NCBI RefSeq assembly: GCF_006345805.1
Contig: NW_021824224.1
Location: 1-19,628, forward strand
Origin: Octopus sinensis
Lineage: Eukaryota
Direction of reading: 5' to 3'
Length of the DNA: 19,628 bases
Part shown: one piece after another, positions 233 through 16,375 of the stretch
How positions within the stretch are numbered: the first letter of the stretch is position 1
Layout: the number at the start of each line of letters is the position of its first letter
Translations under genes and position numbers: made by a program
Notes under the pieces: generated by a model
Databases searched by the model: none
The model's input: the letters and a program-made list of their open reading frames with translations, nothing else
Told to the model about the DNA's origin: nothing

Positions 233-500
233 AAAGAGAGAATAGGAAGCTTCAGATAATGCGGTAATTTTTTATAAAACCATTATATTTCAGGCACAGA
301 AAAACAGTCGGGGAAATATCCAGCTATGTAGATTCCGTTAACCCATTCAAAATGCAAGAGGATTTGAATGGGTTAACAGAAGCTGCGTAACTAGATATTT
401 CACAGACTGTTTTTTTCTCTGAAGATGGGCCTTTGCACCTGAAATATAAAGGTTTTTAAAAACTTTCCGCATTGTCTGAAGCTTTCTATTTCCTCTCTTT
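233..500. mobile_element. Imperfect fold-back palindrome (MITE-like or PLE-terminus-derived)
   Basis: 233-351 is the reverse complement of 363-500 (e.g. GAAGCTTCAGATAATGCGG vs CCGCATTGTCTGAAGCTTTC; GTTAACCCATTCAAA vs TTTGAATGGGTTAAC), with an 11-nt spacer. Confidence 0.8.
415..452 (+). ncRNA. Degenerate minimal type I hammerhead ribozyme motif
   Basis: CTGAAGA(419-425)-T-GGGC.CTTT.GCACCT-GAAA(441-444)-TAT-A-AAGG. Both core halves are canonical and ATAT is a palindromic stem III, but stems I and II are imperfect. Confidence 0.5.
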
Positions 501-567
501 TTTGCCGTCTTCGATATCACAATACTTCTAATGAACTACATCGCTCTTATACTTATATTTATACATT

Positions 568-956
568 ACTCTTTACTTGTTTCAGTCATATGACTGCGGC
601 CATGTTGGAGTACCGCCTTTAATCGAGCAAATCGACCCCAGGGCTTATTCTTTGTAAGCTTAATATTTATTCTATCTGTCTCGCTTGCCGGACCGCTAAG
701 TGACAGGGACGTAAACACACCACCATCGGTTGTCAAGCGATGTTGGGGGGACAAACACACAGACACAAACACATACACACATATATATACATATACATAT
801 ATACGACGGGCTTCTTTCAGTTTCCGCCTACCAAATCCACTCACAAGGCTTTGGTCAGCCCGAGGCTAAAATAGAAGATACTTGCCCAAGGTACCACACA
901 GTGGGACTGAACCCGGAACTATGTGGCTGGTAAGCAAGCTACTTACCACCAGCCAA
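568..956 (-). mobile_element. tRNA-derived SINE, family A (octopus-type), near full length
   Basis: Reverse complement aligns end to end with 6867-7273: A/B-box head, internal (TA/TG) microsatellite, tail GACTGAAACAAGTAAAGAG. Confidence 0.92.
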
Positions 957-959
957 CAC

Positions 960-1230
960 ATATACGTTCATATATGTATATATGTATGTATGTATGTATG
1001 TATGTTTGTATGTAATATATTATGTATGCATGTATATATCTATCTACAAATATATATATTATATATATATATATATATATATATTATATATATATATATA
1101 ATAATATAAGTAAAATTGGACAAAGTAGAAAATGTTAATTATGTATATAGTATATAACACACGTGCGCGTGCACACACCACACACACACACACACAAACA
1201 CACATAAACACACACTCGTACACATATGTG
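960..1230. repeat. Compound microsatellite (TATG)n/(TA)n/(CA)n
   Basis: Read directly. Confidence 0.9.
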
Positions 1231-1232
1231 TA

Positions 1233-2120
1233 CAGGGAATGTGGGCTAAATTTTACAGTTTGTTAAAAAGGAAAAGAAAACGTAATATCCCATCTAAAAA
1301 TTAGTGTTTTAAAAGTTAAAAAATAGCAAGTAAATTATAGCTGGGGGATAACAGTTTATTCAAAGTAGCCACCATCAGTTTCCCCCACGACCTCAAGACG
1401 GGTCCATAAACTGACATATGCGTTCCTCACTGTGTCCATGGGAAGATCTTCCAACATTTACTTGATCGTGGCGTCTTTGGTGTTGCAGGTAGAGTTGTTA
1501 GTGTTTTTCTGAACCATACCCGACACAGAGTAATTCATGGGATTACAATCGGGGGAATTAGGTCGGACACTGGGACTGGTGAAGTAGAAAAAGTTCTCTG
1601 CTGACTCTTTCCGGAGGTATAACCAGCCGCCGAATCTTGCTGCTACACATTTTGCCTTCCATAGTTTTCCATAGCCTCCATTAGATTCACATAATCGTCT
1701 GAATTGAGCCTAAGGCCTTTGATAAAAGATGTGGGGAAGCGTGACGTCACCCTCACTTGAGGCACACCCATAGATCAACACAGTTTGAGTTAACTTGGTT
1801 TTTATCATATGCGGTATGTCATATGGATTGAAGGTAAGCCACCTGTTGATCTGTTGATTGAAGGTAAGCCACCTGTGTTGTGCAACTGGTCTTAGTAGAA
1901 GTTCTTTTCATCTAAGAAGAACCAAATCATCTCCTGCTCAACAGGATGCCTCAGCTTGTTCAGGAGCTGCTTTGCATTCGATAAGCGGTTCTCCTTGGCC
2001 TTGGCTGTTAGAATTTGTCTCTCGCACCTCTTGTGAAAACTACGTGACAATCTTTGATCTTAGTTTCGCTGTACAAAGGCTGACCTGGCATTAAACAACA
2101 TCAGTTGTATAGGGTGACAT
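1233..2120 (-). mobile_element. Decayed Tc1/mariner-superfamily DNA transposon, one end retained
   Basis: TA at 1231-1232 is followed by CAGGGAATGTGGGCTAAATT, a typical Tc1/mariner terminus, downstream of a transposase remnant. The opposite TIR was not found. Confidence 0.82.
1356..2090 (-). pseudogene. DDE/D transposase pseudogene, maT (DD37D)-like
   Basis: Manual minus-strand translation across frameshifts and stops gives QILTAKAKENRLSNAKQLLNKLRHP..MIWFFLDEKNF (D1 at 1910-1912), IYGCASSEGDV.LPHIF..GLRLNSDDY, QQDS (D2 at 1634-1636), PNSPDCNPMNY and ..RLEVVGETDGGYFE* (stop at 1356-1358). The third catalytic position reads N. The D2-D3 spacer is 98 nt and frameshifted, so the DD37D call rests on motif resemblance. 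Confidence 0.9.
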
Positions 2121-2189
2121 ATATTCACGTGGGTTTAATTTAGCACGTGATTTTTATTCTTGATTTACGAAAATATAGAATTCAAGTTA

Positions 2190-13837: not shown

Positions 13838-13990
13838 TCGTGGCTGCATGGTTCAAAAGCTTTCCAACCACATGGTTCCCTGCTTCAGTCCCACTGCGTG
13901 GTACCTTGGGCAAGTGTCGTCTAGTATAGCCTCAGGCCGACCAATGCCTTGTGAGTGGATTTGGTAGACGGAACTGAAAAGAAGCCCGCT
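13838..13990 (+). mobile_element. SINE family A, 5' half
   Basis: Head through GAAGCCCG, ending at the internal (TA)n linker. Confidence 0.88.
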
Positions 13991-14031
13991 GTATATATAT
14001 ATATATATATATATATATATTATATATATAT

Positions 14032-15590
14032 AAACTTAGATATGTTTCGACCAAAGATTGGTCCAGGCCATGTCTAACTTAATAGCACCACCTGATAGGA
14101 TTACTCGAATCCTGTTTAAGTCAAGTTTTGTTCAAGTAGTGAGTTCTTGTTAGGTGAGTTGTATCAGGTTTTGTTCAAGTAGTGAGTTCTTGTTGGGTGA
14201 GTTGTATCCAATTATGGGTGGCTTATCTGGTATTCTTTGAAGGAATCTATCCAGACTCCGTTTAAAGTTGATGGATCTTTTCCTCTTTGATCTCCCTCGG
14301 GACAATGTTAAATAGGGCAGGGCCTGTTGAGGAAAGAAATTATGTTGCAGTGTACATGTATGTTGTGATCTTGAATTGGGCAGGGGACGTATAGCCCGTG
14401 GTCCAAGTCTTGGATGAACCTTGAAGCTAATGTTTAGGTCGTTTGGGCAAAGTTGGCGGTATATTTTCCACATCGTACAAATGATGTACCGCTCACGGCG
14501 ACGCTGGAGGGAGTAAAGTTTCAAGGCTTTAAGGCGATCCCAAGAATCGAGAGCAGCCATGCCTTCAATTTGTTTAGTGAGTGCCCTCTGGGGTGACTCA
14601 ATTCTGGAGATGTTTTGTCTTGTGTGAGGAGACGACAGTGGGCAGCAGTATTCAAAGTGTGGCCGTACAAAGGAGGAAAAAAGTGGTATGATGACACCTT
14701 GTTCTCTGGACCGGAAAGTTCTTAAGATCCAGGAACTCATCCTACGAGCTATATCGACCTTCTTGTTGATGTGTGCGCTCCAACTGAGATCGTCATCAAC
14801 AATTACACCAGGTCTCTGATATTGTTAGAGGCTGTGAGCGGTTCCCCTGAAGGAAGAGAGTATGGTGTTTTAGTGAGGAATTTCTTCCAAAATGCATCAG
14901 CTCAAATTTTTCCTCATTCAGTTGCATTTTGTTTCTGTCTGCCCATTGACTCACAGCATATAGATCAGACTGGAGTGAGTTCGGTCTGCTTCTTCATTGA
15001 CGATTTGCTGGAGCTTAGTGTCATCAGCAAATATTTTCACTTTGCAGTAATGTACGACACTGGAAAGGTCGTACGTAAATTATGAAGAGTAGCGGACCCA
15101 AAACAGTTCCCTGGGGAACACGCTGGGGGCTGGGTTTAAGTGGACTCCATCAACTACAACATGTTGTGTTCTATTCGCCAGGAAATACTTAATCCAGTGT
15201 AGAACTTTTCCACGGATCCAACATTTGCCAATTTTGAGAGTAGGATATTATGGTCTACCCTGTCGAACGCTTTACTGAAGTCAAGATATATGACGTCAGA
15301 GTTCGAACCTTTCCCAAGGCTTGAGTACATCTTCAATGTGGTGTAAGAGCGTGTTAGACAGTCCCTGCCACAGCGAAAGCCATGCTGATTGCATTTAGGA
15401 GTTTGTGGGTCTCCAGGAAGTCAGCTATCCCTGATCTTAACACTCTTTCAAACACTTTAATGATGTGGGAGGTGAGTGAGATTGGGCGATAGTTGAGTAC
15501 GAGGTATCTGTTTCCCTGTTTGAAAACCGGGATGACCGACTGGGATAGAAACTGTTTCGGTATATAACCTGCGTCTAACGAATTTCTCCA
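14032..15590 (-). mobile_element. 5'-truncated CR1/L2-type LINE; RT pseudogene plus 3' tail
   Basis: Minus-strand motifs in order: GNRYLVLNYRPISLTSHIIKVFER, YLDFSKAFDRVDH, VPQGTVLGPL, IFADDTKL, RDLGVIVD, RPHFEYCCPL, RLKALKLYSLQRRRERY. Several frameshifts; no endonuclease domain is retained. Confidence 0.95.
14125..14208. repeat. 43-bp tandem duplication at the LINE ORF2 end
   Basis: GTTTTGTTCAAGTAGTGAGTTCTTGTT(A/G)GGTGAGTTGTATC starts at 14125 and again at 14168. Confidence 0.9.
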
Positions 15591-15806
15591 GTGTGTATAT
15601 ATTCGTGTATGTGTGTCTGTTTGTCCCCACATGATCGCTTGATAACCGATGTTGGTGTGTTTACGTCCCCGTAACTTAGCGGTTCGGCAAAAGAGACCGA
15701 TAGAATAATTACTAGGCTTACAAAGAATAAGTCCTGGGGTCGATTTTCTCGACTAAAGACGGTGCTCCAGCATGGGTGCAGTTATATGACTGAGAAGAAT
15801 AAAAGA
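15591..15806 (+). mobile_element. SINE family A, 3' half
   Basis: Starts at the TG-rich linker and continues TTTGTCCCC..CTTAGCGGTTCGGC..GGTGCTCCAGCATGG..ATGACTGA. Confidence 0.9.
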
Positions 15807-15971
15807 AGACATGAATACATGCATACACAAAACACACACCACACACACACACACACACACAACACACACACACACACACACACACACATATATATAGTAT
15901 ATATACCAGAGTAATCACATGAATGTGAAGCAAGGTGGAAAACACAGTACTCCAATACCAGAGGTAGAGTG

Positions 15972-16154
15972 ATATGCTATATTAAAAAGGAGCAAAAATA
16001 ATATAAGAACTGTTACTCAGAGTTTCACGTTCCCGTTCGTCGGACAGTTTTTACATTTCCACAGTTTGTTTAGAAAAACTGTCCGACGAACGGAAACGTA
16101 AAACTCTGAGTAACATTTTTTGTGATTTTTTTGCTGCTTTTTAATAAAGTATAT
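15972..16154. mobile_element. Fold-back palindrome (~80-bp arms, 21-nt loop)
   Basis: 16011-16052 versus 16074-16115 match at 40 of 42 positions; weaker pairing extends out to about 15972 and 16154. Confidence 0.88.
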
Positions 16155-16159
16155 ATATA

Positions 16160-16375
16160 TATAACGGGAAGCTTTATGAAAATAAACAAAAGACGAAGGC
16201 AGGTGGAATACAAACAAACAATTGTATTAGTATGGCGCTCAGGAATATAAATAAAACAAGTCTTTTACGTTTCGAGCCTACGCTCTTCAACAGAAAGATA
16301 CACAGAAAAGAAACAGAAAGATACAAGGAGAGAAAAAAAATGCGTGCAGAGGCTAGCGAATCAACATGGCGATTA
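16160..16375 (-). mobile_element. Short PLE-terminus-like repeat carrying a hammerhead motif
   Basis: Starts at a (TA)n run and contains the 16261-16298 motif. Confidence 0.6.
16261..16298 (-). ncRNA. Minimal type I hammerhead motif with A6U core (CUGUUGA)
   Basis: Minus strand: TCTTT-CTGTTGA-A-GAGC.GTAG.GCTC-GAAA-CGT-A-AAAGA. 5-bp stem I, 4-bp stem II, palindromic ACGT, GUA triplet. Confidence 0.75.

Follow-up and report, generated by a model that had tools for sequence, protein, structure and literature searches.

Penelope-like elements (PLEs) of the Hydra clade are recognised by a CxCX5C linker, the lack of a CCHH motif between GIY and YIG, C-terminal CxxC and CxH motifs, the presence of DKT and RWK, and insertion at (TA)n; canonical hammerhead ribozymes have been reported in all Hydra-clade elements (Craig et al. 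2021, PMC8557442). The same study reports (TA)n targeting for both Hydra- and Naiad-clade PLEs, and head-to-head arrangements of 5'-truncated copies have been described for PLEs. Minimal hammerheads of PLEs have been known since 2014, including a UUGANAA core in which positions 3 and 8 covary as U3–A8 (Cervera & de la Peña 2014, PMC4209133). In metazoan non-LTR (long terminal repeat) retrozymes, units of 150–450 bp with a type I hammerhead each are repeated directly in tandem, and the two ribozymes cut out a monomer that can circularise (Cervera & de la Peña 2020, PMC7229834). Here, we compare with these systems a stretch of 19,628 nt from Octopus sinensis (contig NW_021824224.1, positions 1 to 19,628; hereafter the window), in which ten minimal hammerhead motifs had been proposed. 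We consider it probable that the window holds relics of hammerheads from the 3' ends of PLEs, namely an inverted pair at 16008–16118, proposed motif 9, a ~160-bp repeat family (motifs 6, 7 and 10) and the solitary motifs 2 and 5, and that motifs 1, 3, 4 and 8 are chance matches.

All ten strings of the original prediction, numbered here by position, occur where it had placed them. We parsed them against the type I hammerhead, i.e. C3 U4 G5 A6 N7 G8 A9, G12 A13 A14, an A15.1–U16.1 pair, H17 (not G), and three helices with helix I open. Motifs 2, 5, 6, 7, 9 and 10 are supported, whereas motifs 1 (415–452, plus strand), 3 (7309–7346, minus strand), 4 (7621–7668, minus strand) and 8 (11245–11289, minus strand) fail the parse of core or stems and are chance matches, no better than controls. 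The claim of ten hammerheads is thereby partly confirmed: about half of the motifs are true remnants of PLE hammerheads, for the most part mutated, and the others resemble hammerheads by chance.

The conserved core is complete in motif 9, apart from one extra C at the junction of helix II and G12, and in motifs 2 and 5 once the paired U3–A8 change is allowed. It is incomplete in motifs 6 (G17), 7 (C16.1 and G17) and 10 (A6U), in the minus-strand member of the inverted pair (16008–16049; U4C), and in motifs 3 (C15.1), 4 (A6G, G17) and 8 (A9C, A16.1). Each of the four unsupported motifs is also short of at least one helix: helix II of motif 1 has just 2 bp with an extra U on either side, helix III is absent from motifs 3 and 8, and helix I from motif 4. 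The lengths of helices I, II and III are 6+5, 6–8 and 3 bp in motif 9, 5, 4 and 2 bp in motif 10, and 4, 4 and 2 bp in motif 6. The base between A9 and position 10.1 is an unpaired A in motifs 6, 7 and 10 and a G in motif 5, and is absent in motifs 2 and 9; the 10.1–11.1 pair is G–C in motifs 5, 6, 9 and 10 and A–U in motif 2. Helix III palindromes are loop-less (ACGU, AAUU, ACCGGU). Two features to which the original prediction had drawn attention, a palindromic helix III with no loop and an additional base after A9, do indeed occur in the published minimal PLE hammerhead (PMC4209133).

Motif 1 sits in one arm of a foldback at 219–517, of which the other arm lacks the 'core' owing to a 12-nt indel. 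Further long palindromes or foldbacks occur at 7493–7594 and 9191–9343.

The window contains the remains of a PLE in two pieces, encoded by an open reading frame (ORF) with reverse transcriptase (RT) and endonuclease parts:

11860–12598, plus strand: decayed Hydra-clade PLE, with the C-terminal part of the RT, a CxCX5C linker (first C lost), a GIY-YIG endonuclease without CCHH, CxxC and CxH, and a 3' untranslated region (UTR) ending at (TA)n.
11574–11831, minus strand: inverted RT1/2 piece of the same kind of ORF (CRLIKPAKSEIG...), its translation compared with residues ~185–262 of the relative P0159.

Judged by these diagnostic motifs, 11574–12598 is a decayed Hydra-clade PLE. The copy is interrupted by frameshifts and stop codons. 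Its ORF at 12050–12367 (plus strand) gave a weak GIY-YIG match and has 2,906 relatives in a representative library; with the downstream frames it reads S-C-RDKNL-C (first C lost), IIY...YVG, CGLC and CQH, with (TA)n flanks. The DKT/RWK region is missing from the window copy, which aligns with the external sequence L001. A full-length relative, P0159 (722 amino acids), has RWK, DKT, CNCRRKQSC, CDLC, CRH and an RT3 motif of the FYPSI type. No RT domain was found in the PLE relatives by Pfam scans, and a search of PDB sequences returned no match, so the assignment relies on the diagnostic motifs from the literature. Exact-protein look-ups for four window ORFs also gave no match. The two pieces of the copy meet head-to-head at ~11845, the inverted RT1/2 segment corresponding to residues ~185–262 of P0159 and the remainder to ~277–722.

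Hammerheads accompany ORFs of this kind in external sequences. In the marine metagenome sequence L006, 2.5-kb units are arranged in tandem, and each stop codon is followed at ~105 nt by a type I hammerhead (994–1047 and 3485–3538). Defect-free hammerheads occur in L007 at 5869–5918 (plus strand) and 6113–6170 (minus strand), and a near-identical copy of the former at 1261–1310 (plus strand) lies ~150 nt past an endonuclease ORF. L012 and L013 together hold five copies of GUUGU-CUGACGA-U-CGC-AUAAC-GCG-U-GAAA-CUCUGAGU-A-ACAAC; those adjacent to ORFs are found roughly 100–150 nt beyond the ORF end, and two reach (TA)n ~38 nt past the cleavage site.

A counterpart of these external hammerheads, overlooked by the original prediction, occurs in the window as an inverted pair:

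16008–16049, minus strand: Hydra-clade PLE-type hammerhead, AACUGU CCGACGA ACG-GGAA-CGU GAAA CUCUGAGU A ACAGUU, with U4→C; N17 is A at 16014.
16077–16118, plus strand: second arm of the inverted pair, with a CCGACGA core and G12→A (AAAA for GAAA).
15972–16154, no strand: 183-bp palindrome formed by two head-to-head 5'-truncated PLE 3' ends; (TA)n at 16150–16163 abuts the right arm.

The palindrome is an inverted repeat with 80% identity (self-BLAST), and U4→C is present in both arms of the pair. The string GAAACUCUGAGUAAC is identical between 16008–16049 (minus strand) and the PLE-linked hammerhead of L012 and L013, which lies ~130 nt past PLE ORFs. Relative to the L012 hammerhead, helix I of 16008–16049 has compensatory changes at two positions, one pair going from U-A to C-G and the other from G-C to A-U. 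On sequence grounds, the pair and the hammerhead that follows Hydra-clade PLE ORFs in the external sequences are homologous, and the homology reaches beyond the core. This homology also supports a predicted location of the pseudo-LTR (pLTR) type for the pair.

The most complete hammerhead among the proposed ten is motif 9:

13341–13415, plus strand: near-canonical type I hammerhead (motif 9), with helix I at 13341–13352 / 13404–13415, core CUGACGA at 13353–13359, GAAA, helix III ACUCGAAGU, and predicted cleavage after U17 at 13403.
13255–13440, plus strand: unique segment carrying motif 9 at its 3' edge, which ends ~30–65 nt ahead of a (TA)n tract.

Next to its canonical CUGACGA, motif 9 has a helix II of 6–8 bp, helix III ACU-CGA-AGU, a GUU site and a helix I of 6+5 bp. 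The sole defect is the extra C between helix II and G12; it can alternatively be drawn as a 1-nt bulge, in which case G10.1–C11.1 lies next to the core. The fold has a z score of −3.6, and the minimum free energy fold forms helices I and II. Motif 9 looks competent as a monomer, though its helix III is short.

A paralogue of the segment was found in L008 (window 13271–13427 versus L008 117–257, minus strand; nhmmer E about 1e-4 to 2e-3). It is inverted, lies immediately upstream of a 5'-truncated copy of the window's own PLE family, and ends in (TA)5. Its helix III, like ACUCGAAGU of motif 9, resembles ACUCUGAGU of the L012 hammerhead. Hence, a PLE neighbourhood of motif 9 is seen, as far as the alignments indicate, at two loci (window and L008). 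Searches with nhmmer found no further copies of the motif 9 segment or of the ~160-bp family in the window, and word-based protein searches with ORFs read through motif 9 and copy c6 of that family gave no match to relatives. In L008, at 128–143, (TA)n begins exactly at the predicted cleavage site (between GAGUA and AUAUAUAUAUA); this is a single observation, of a kind that would be expected if the inserted cDNA derived from ribozyme-trimmed RNA.

In the window, motif 9 is on the same strand as the PLE endonuclease and follows it at ~800 bp, and ~650 bp of (TA)n and GT-rich low-complexity sequence separates it from the PLE copy. We rejected motif 9 as a direct part of the 3' UTR of this copy, because the two are not contiguous and both the copy and L001 reach (TA)n without a hammerhead. 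Motif 9 may be the displaced 3' end of the window copy, or a separate truncated insertion. The claim that PLE-type hammerheads are present in the window is nevertheless borne out by the decayed Hydra-clade PLE, by the pair with PLE-linked homologues, and by the paralogue of motif 9 beside the same PLE family.

In comparison with the Hydra-clade PLE hammerheads (PMC8557442), the window shares the type I architecture, the CUGAYGA core, GAAAC and a short, near-palindromic helix III. It also has an endonuclease remnant together with motifs homologous to (16008–16118) or resembling (motif 9) the hammerheads of these elements. Unlike their hammerheads, the window copies are fragments; the pair carries U4→C, one arm also G12→A, and in motif 9 helix II has one additional C at its base.

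The hammerheads of L007, L012 and L013 alone served to train a covariance model (R2), with L006 held out, and every position of the window was scored with it; a model of the two L006 copies (R1) was too specific for use on the window. R2 recovered the held-out L006 hammerheads with 30.5 and 23.3 bits. Its top three hits in the window were 16008–16049 (29.6 bits, E=2e-5), 16077–16118 (19.0 bits, E=0.012) and motif 9 (16.9 bits, E=0.04). Motif 10 ranked fifth (12.1 bits) and motif 6 tenth (9.5 bits), while the best non-candidate scored 14.5 bits.

Motifs 6, 7 and 10 belong to three copies of one repeat family of ~160 bp:

8362–8527, plus strand: copy c6, with the hammerhead-like block 8419–8453 (motif 6), AUUU CUGAUGA A GAGC-UUC-GCUC GAAA CGU G AAAU; G17 is at 8449.
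9404–9560, minus strand: copy c7, inverted and ~93% identical to c6, with block 9467–9501 (motif 7); helix II is broken, and C16.1 and G17 are present.
16209–16341, minus strand: diverged copy c10, with block 16261–16298 (motif 10), UCUUU CUGUUGA A GAGC-GUAG-GCUC GAAA CGU A AAAGA.

The original prediction had treated all motifs except 6 and 7 as members of distinct families. For motif 10 this is wrong, since c10 aligns with the copies of motifs 6 and 7 (nhmmer E=1.7e-5 versus c6). Conservation along the unit is highest in the hammerhead-like block. Within this block, the helix I pair 2.4/1.4 is A-U in c6 and c7 and C-G in c10, which is one compensatory change among three copies of one family. 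Copies c6 and c7 have the common ends of a discrete unit, each abutting (TA)n, and lie inverted, 880 bp apart, on either side of unrelated sequence.

Motif 6 departs from a minimal hammerhead in G17 alone, and motif 10 from a perfect one in A6→U alone. The ancestral base 17 of the family is A or G, the three copies being uninformative by parsimony. Mutagenesis has shown the hammerhead core to be intolerant of substitution, and copies with U4C, A6U, G12A, G17 or C16.1 should be dead. Accordingly, each ~160-bp copy carries a change that is expected to be inactivating (G17; C16.1 plus G17; A6U). CUGUUGA and CUGGUGA had been put forward as new cores: the former is a mutation in the single copy c10, the other two copies of the family reading CUGAUGA, and the latter belongs to an unsupported motif. 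The description of the elements as non-autonomous is plausible for the ~160-bp family but does not extend to the remaining motifs. Repeats resembling telomeric (TTAGGG) occur at 16461–16510 (TTAGGGTTAGGGTTAATTAGGGTTAGGG...), ~120 nt away from c10 and ~300 nt away from the palindrome with the PLE hammerheads; a combination of telomeric repeats and hammerheads is known from PLEs that lack the endonuclease.

The remaining two supported motifs are solitary and have the U3–A8 core:

6568–6609, minus strand: minimal hammerhead (motif 2) with UUGAAAA, helix II AGUC/GACU, helix III ACCGGU and A17 at 6574.
7999–8037, minus strand: minimal hammerhead (motif 5) with UUGAAAA, an extra G after A9, G10.1–C11.1, helix II GUUG/CAAC, helix III AAUU and U17 at 8002.

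In both, UUGAAAA results from C3→U plus G8→A, helix II has 4 bp and H17 is valid. Helix I comprises 2 contiguous pairs, two mismatches and then 2 further pairs in motif 2, and 2 pairs only in motif 5. Helix I is thus very short in both, and motifs 2 and 5 could perhaps act only as dimers. The original prediction had warned that searches requiring CUGANGA would miss copies; this holds for the U3–A8 core, for which it had already been published (PMC4209133), whereas the other divergent cores reflect decay or noise.

The ~160-bp family and the solitary motifs resemble the minimal PLE hammerheads (PMC4209133) in the unpaired base after A9, G10.1–C11.1, the loop-less palindromic 15.x/16.x, the short helix I and the U3–A8 core, and also in that copies are mostly solitary and heterogeneous, sometimes in opposite-strand pairs. 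They differ in a helix II of 4 bp versus 6–8 bp in the published consensus, in the 2 helix I pairs of motifs 2 and 5, and in the mutations that all three ~160-bp copies carry in the core or at the cleavage site.

Three descriptors were used to compare the window with chance expectation. A loose descriptor that admits all ten motifs (at most 2 mismatches in the core, 3 of 4 pairs for helix I and for helix II, any spacer) gave 229 matches in the window; 100 dinucleotide shuffles gave 286±19, and the reversed sequence 202. This descriptor thus shows no excess, and membership among the ten carries no evidence in itself. The first descriptor, in which U3–A8 was scored as two defects and at least 3 helix I pairs were demanded, also gave no excess at up to 3 defects (10 matches versus 9.4 in controls). 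At up to 1 or 2 defects an excess was present, and it was upheld by permuted decoy cores on the real sequence.

The literature-based unified descriptor accepts CUGANGA or the U3–A8 form UUGANAA as the core, tolerates an unpaired base after A9, and permits no more than 1 defect among 12 conserved positions. It found 10 matches in the window, where shuffling gave 1.86 (200 shuffles) and permuted decoy cores on the real sequence gave 2.2 (150 decoys); none of these shuffles or decoys reached a count of 10. With helix II of at least 4 bp, 7 matches remained versus 0.6 expected, a count that the shuffles and decoys again failed to reach. About two of the 10 matches are expected to be noise, the weakest being 417–452, 7295–7344, 5376–5438 and 12353–12403. 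Motifs 2 and 5 have zero defects under this descriptor, and such defect-free U3–A8 motifs (2 in the window) numbered 0.02 in shuffles and 0.011 with decoys. The quality of motif 9 was equalled by 0 of 300 shuffles and 0 of 160 decoys. Hence, the supported motifs exceed chance.

The supported motifs are also associated with (TA)n. A tract of (TA)≥5 within 150 nt downstream, on the motif's own strand, was found for 7 of the 8 supported motifs and for 1 of the 4 unsupported ones, compared to a background of 17.6% of window positions; the binomial probability is about 3.5e-5, with a threshold chosen after the fact. The distances are 44 nt for the plus-strand arm of the pair, 59 for motif 2, 66 for motif 9, 71 for c7, 103 for c10, 125 for motif 5 and 136 for c6. 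This proximity fits the (TA)n targeting of the Hydra and Naiad clades.

Taken together, all supported motifs fall within known kinds, i.e. the minimal PLE hammerheads of 2014 and the Hydra-clade hammerheads of 2021. Their apparently non-canonical cores are best explained by mutational decay together with the U3–A8 covariation already described, rather than by novel catalytic solutions. The established model for PLE hammerheads consists of folding, palindrome pairing, cleavage at H17, and insertion by RT and endonuclease (PMC4209133). Following this model, the transcript of an active element would fold into the hammerhead three-way junction, with minimal hammerheads pairing their palindromic helix III between two RNA copies. 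Self-cleavage 3' of H17 would leave a 2',3'-cyclic phosphate and a 5'-OH and would trim unit-length RNA out of a longer transcript; the RT and GIY-YIG endonuclease of the element would then copy the trimmed RNA into (TA)n sites. Any catalytic activity of the window copies is a matter of inference, as is the element that mobilised each of them; only motif 9, and perhaps motifs 2 and 5 as dimers, look competent.

Several observations weigh against the interpretation of these motifs as PLE relics. The window PLE copy and its closest relatives (L001, L008) reach (TA)n ~60–100 nt past the stop codon and are hammerhead-free, which makes the link between motif 9 and the PLE indirect. The L008 paralogue of motif 9 is degenerate, with CUGAAGU (A9→U) and helix II mismatches, and thus gives no sign of purifying selection. 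Motif 5 sits amid a structure at 7901–8103 that resembles a miniature inverted-repeat transposable element (MITE), an atypical context for a PLE. Paralogues of motifs 2 and 5 and of the ~160-bp family were not recovered by DNA pattern scans of metagenome and viral contigs or by protein searches, so that the case for motifs 2 and 5 is a statistical one. The single DNA-pattern match, in L005, was discarded as chance, because it falls inside a bacterial coding region, which we take to be a biotin-carboxyl-carrier gene.

Further points of this kind concern the methods. The descriptor thresholds and the 150-nt window for (TA)n were set after the data had been seen, and the P values are therefore only loose. 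MAFFT misplaced GAAA across the heterogeneous external hammerheads, and the alignment was bootstrapped through covariance models instead. The alignment of 11 distinct sequences obtained in this way speaks for covariation of the stems: 90.4% of its cells were paired, versus 65.6% in shuffles and 31–56% with slid partners, and 10 of the 13 stem pairs changed on both sides. These counts are flattering to the structure, however, since the sequences had been fitted to the model.

Rfam found no hammerhead in the window at the gathering score or at E≤10, nor at E≤10 on 13300–13450. The window motifs share the catalytic core and type I topology of Rfam Hammerhead_1 (RF00163), yet none of them is reported by this model at E≤10; it is geared to hammerheads in which helix II is short and helix III forms a hairpin. 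It also performs poorly on the external positive controls: a defect-free L007 hammerhead scored 17.6 bits versus a gathering score of 34, the other L007 hammerhead was omitted, and both L006 hammerheads were unreported at E≤1. The silence of Rfam on the window is therefore uninformative.

A first alternative is that the motifs are independent, functional, non-autonomous retrozyme-like elements that make circular RNAs and have new, competent non-canonical cores. The short AT-rich unit with a type I hammerhead is indeed reminiscent of metazoan retrozymes. Copies c6 and c7 represent a discrete unit with common ends at (TA)n, and ~160 bp is near the lower limit of the 150–450-bp range (PMC7229834). 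Moreover, a 2026 preprint (Li, Clavereau & Pollet) derives animal retrozymes from PLE pLTRs, and a palindromic helix III suits dimeric cleavage. However, retrozymes are tandem direct repeats, whereas the copies here are solitary or inverted; no direct tandem copies of any motif-bearing unit, and no dimeric direct arrangement, were found in the window, which counts against the retrozyme and circular-RNA part of the original prediction. Every ~160-bp copy is altered at an essential position, and both arms of the 16008–16118 pair have U4→C. As to new cores, CUGUUGA is a single-copy deviation from CUGAUGA and CUGGUGA occurs in an unsupported motif. We therefore regard this alternative as unlikely.

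Similarly doubtful is the proposal that the c6/c7/c10 unit and the solitary motifs with a U3–A8 core stand for families of very short ribozyme elements, mobilised by PLEs and targeted to (TA)n, that are still active elsewhere in the genome. Such families would cleave as dimers and perhaps circularise. If so, they would be animal 'mini-retrozymes' that are invisible to standard annotation by Rfam and Infernal.

Also quite improbable is an explanation in which a composite DNA or foldback element has c6 and c7 as its long terminal inverted repeats, motif 5 is part of a MITE, and the hammerhead-like strings are incidental. The arrangement as such would suit this explanation: c6 and c7 are inverted and 93% identical, 880 bp apart around unrelated sequence, and motif 5 lies in the unique centre of the palindrome 7901–8103, between its 60-bp inverted arms. 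Yet the solitary and diverged c10 has kept the hammerhead-like block best, with a compensatory change in helix I, and defect-free U3–A8 motifs are ~100-fold rarer in controls. Furthermore, inverted copies and inverted 5'-truncated partners are a described pattern of PLE insertion (PMC8557442, PMC4209133).

Finally, an explanation of all motifs as chance matches of AT-rich, hairpin-rich sequence to a pattern that is short and degenerate is very improbable: the counts of the loose and the first descriptor, the silence of Rfam and the failure of motifs 1, 3, 4 and 8 agree with it, but for the supported subset it is refuted by the excess under the unified descriptor (10 versus about 2, and 7 versus 0.6 with the longer helix II), by homology to PLE-ORF hammerheads beyond the core, by the top three ranks in R2 and by the (TA)n association.

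Other repeats are scattered over the window. Copies of a short repeat resembling a short interspersed nuclear element (SINE), 78–87% identical and each abutting microsatellites, occur at 572–955, 6877–7269 (minus strand), 15591–15820 (minus strand), 13859–14027 and 10660–10990; ARAGORN called no transfer RNA (tRNA) in the window. Near-identical direct duplications ~0.8 kb apart (5047–5271 and 5856–6083, 96%; 9618–9825 and 10454–10661, 97%) each bracket purine-rich low-complexity sequence. The most AT-rich part of the window, at 2100–3500, is a 1.4-kb degenerate tandem array with 19-, 33- and 47-bp units around TATCTAAATCACGTTAAGA. Two long ORFs, at 8689–9216 (minus strand; between the inverted c6 and c7) and 14040–15632 (minus strand), had no Pfam match; by eye, we take them to be candidate C-terminal parts of ORF2 proteins of non-LTR retrotransposons.

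PLE-linked hammerheads are known as abundant and heterogeneous in animal genomes, and their presence here is expected. The window offers a worked example of how relics can be told from look-alikes, by means of decoy cores on real sequence, homology to ORF-linked hammerheads and (TA)n context. Since Hammerhead_1 misses even defect-free Hydra-clade hammerheads, with their long helix II and palindromic helix III, routine annotation undercounts this class. If active relatives exist in the genome, ribozyme-bearing mobile elements would be extended to this lineage.

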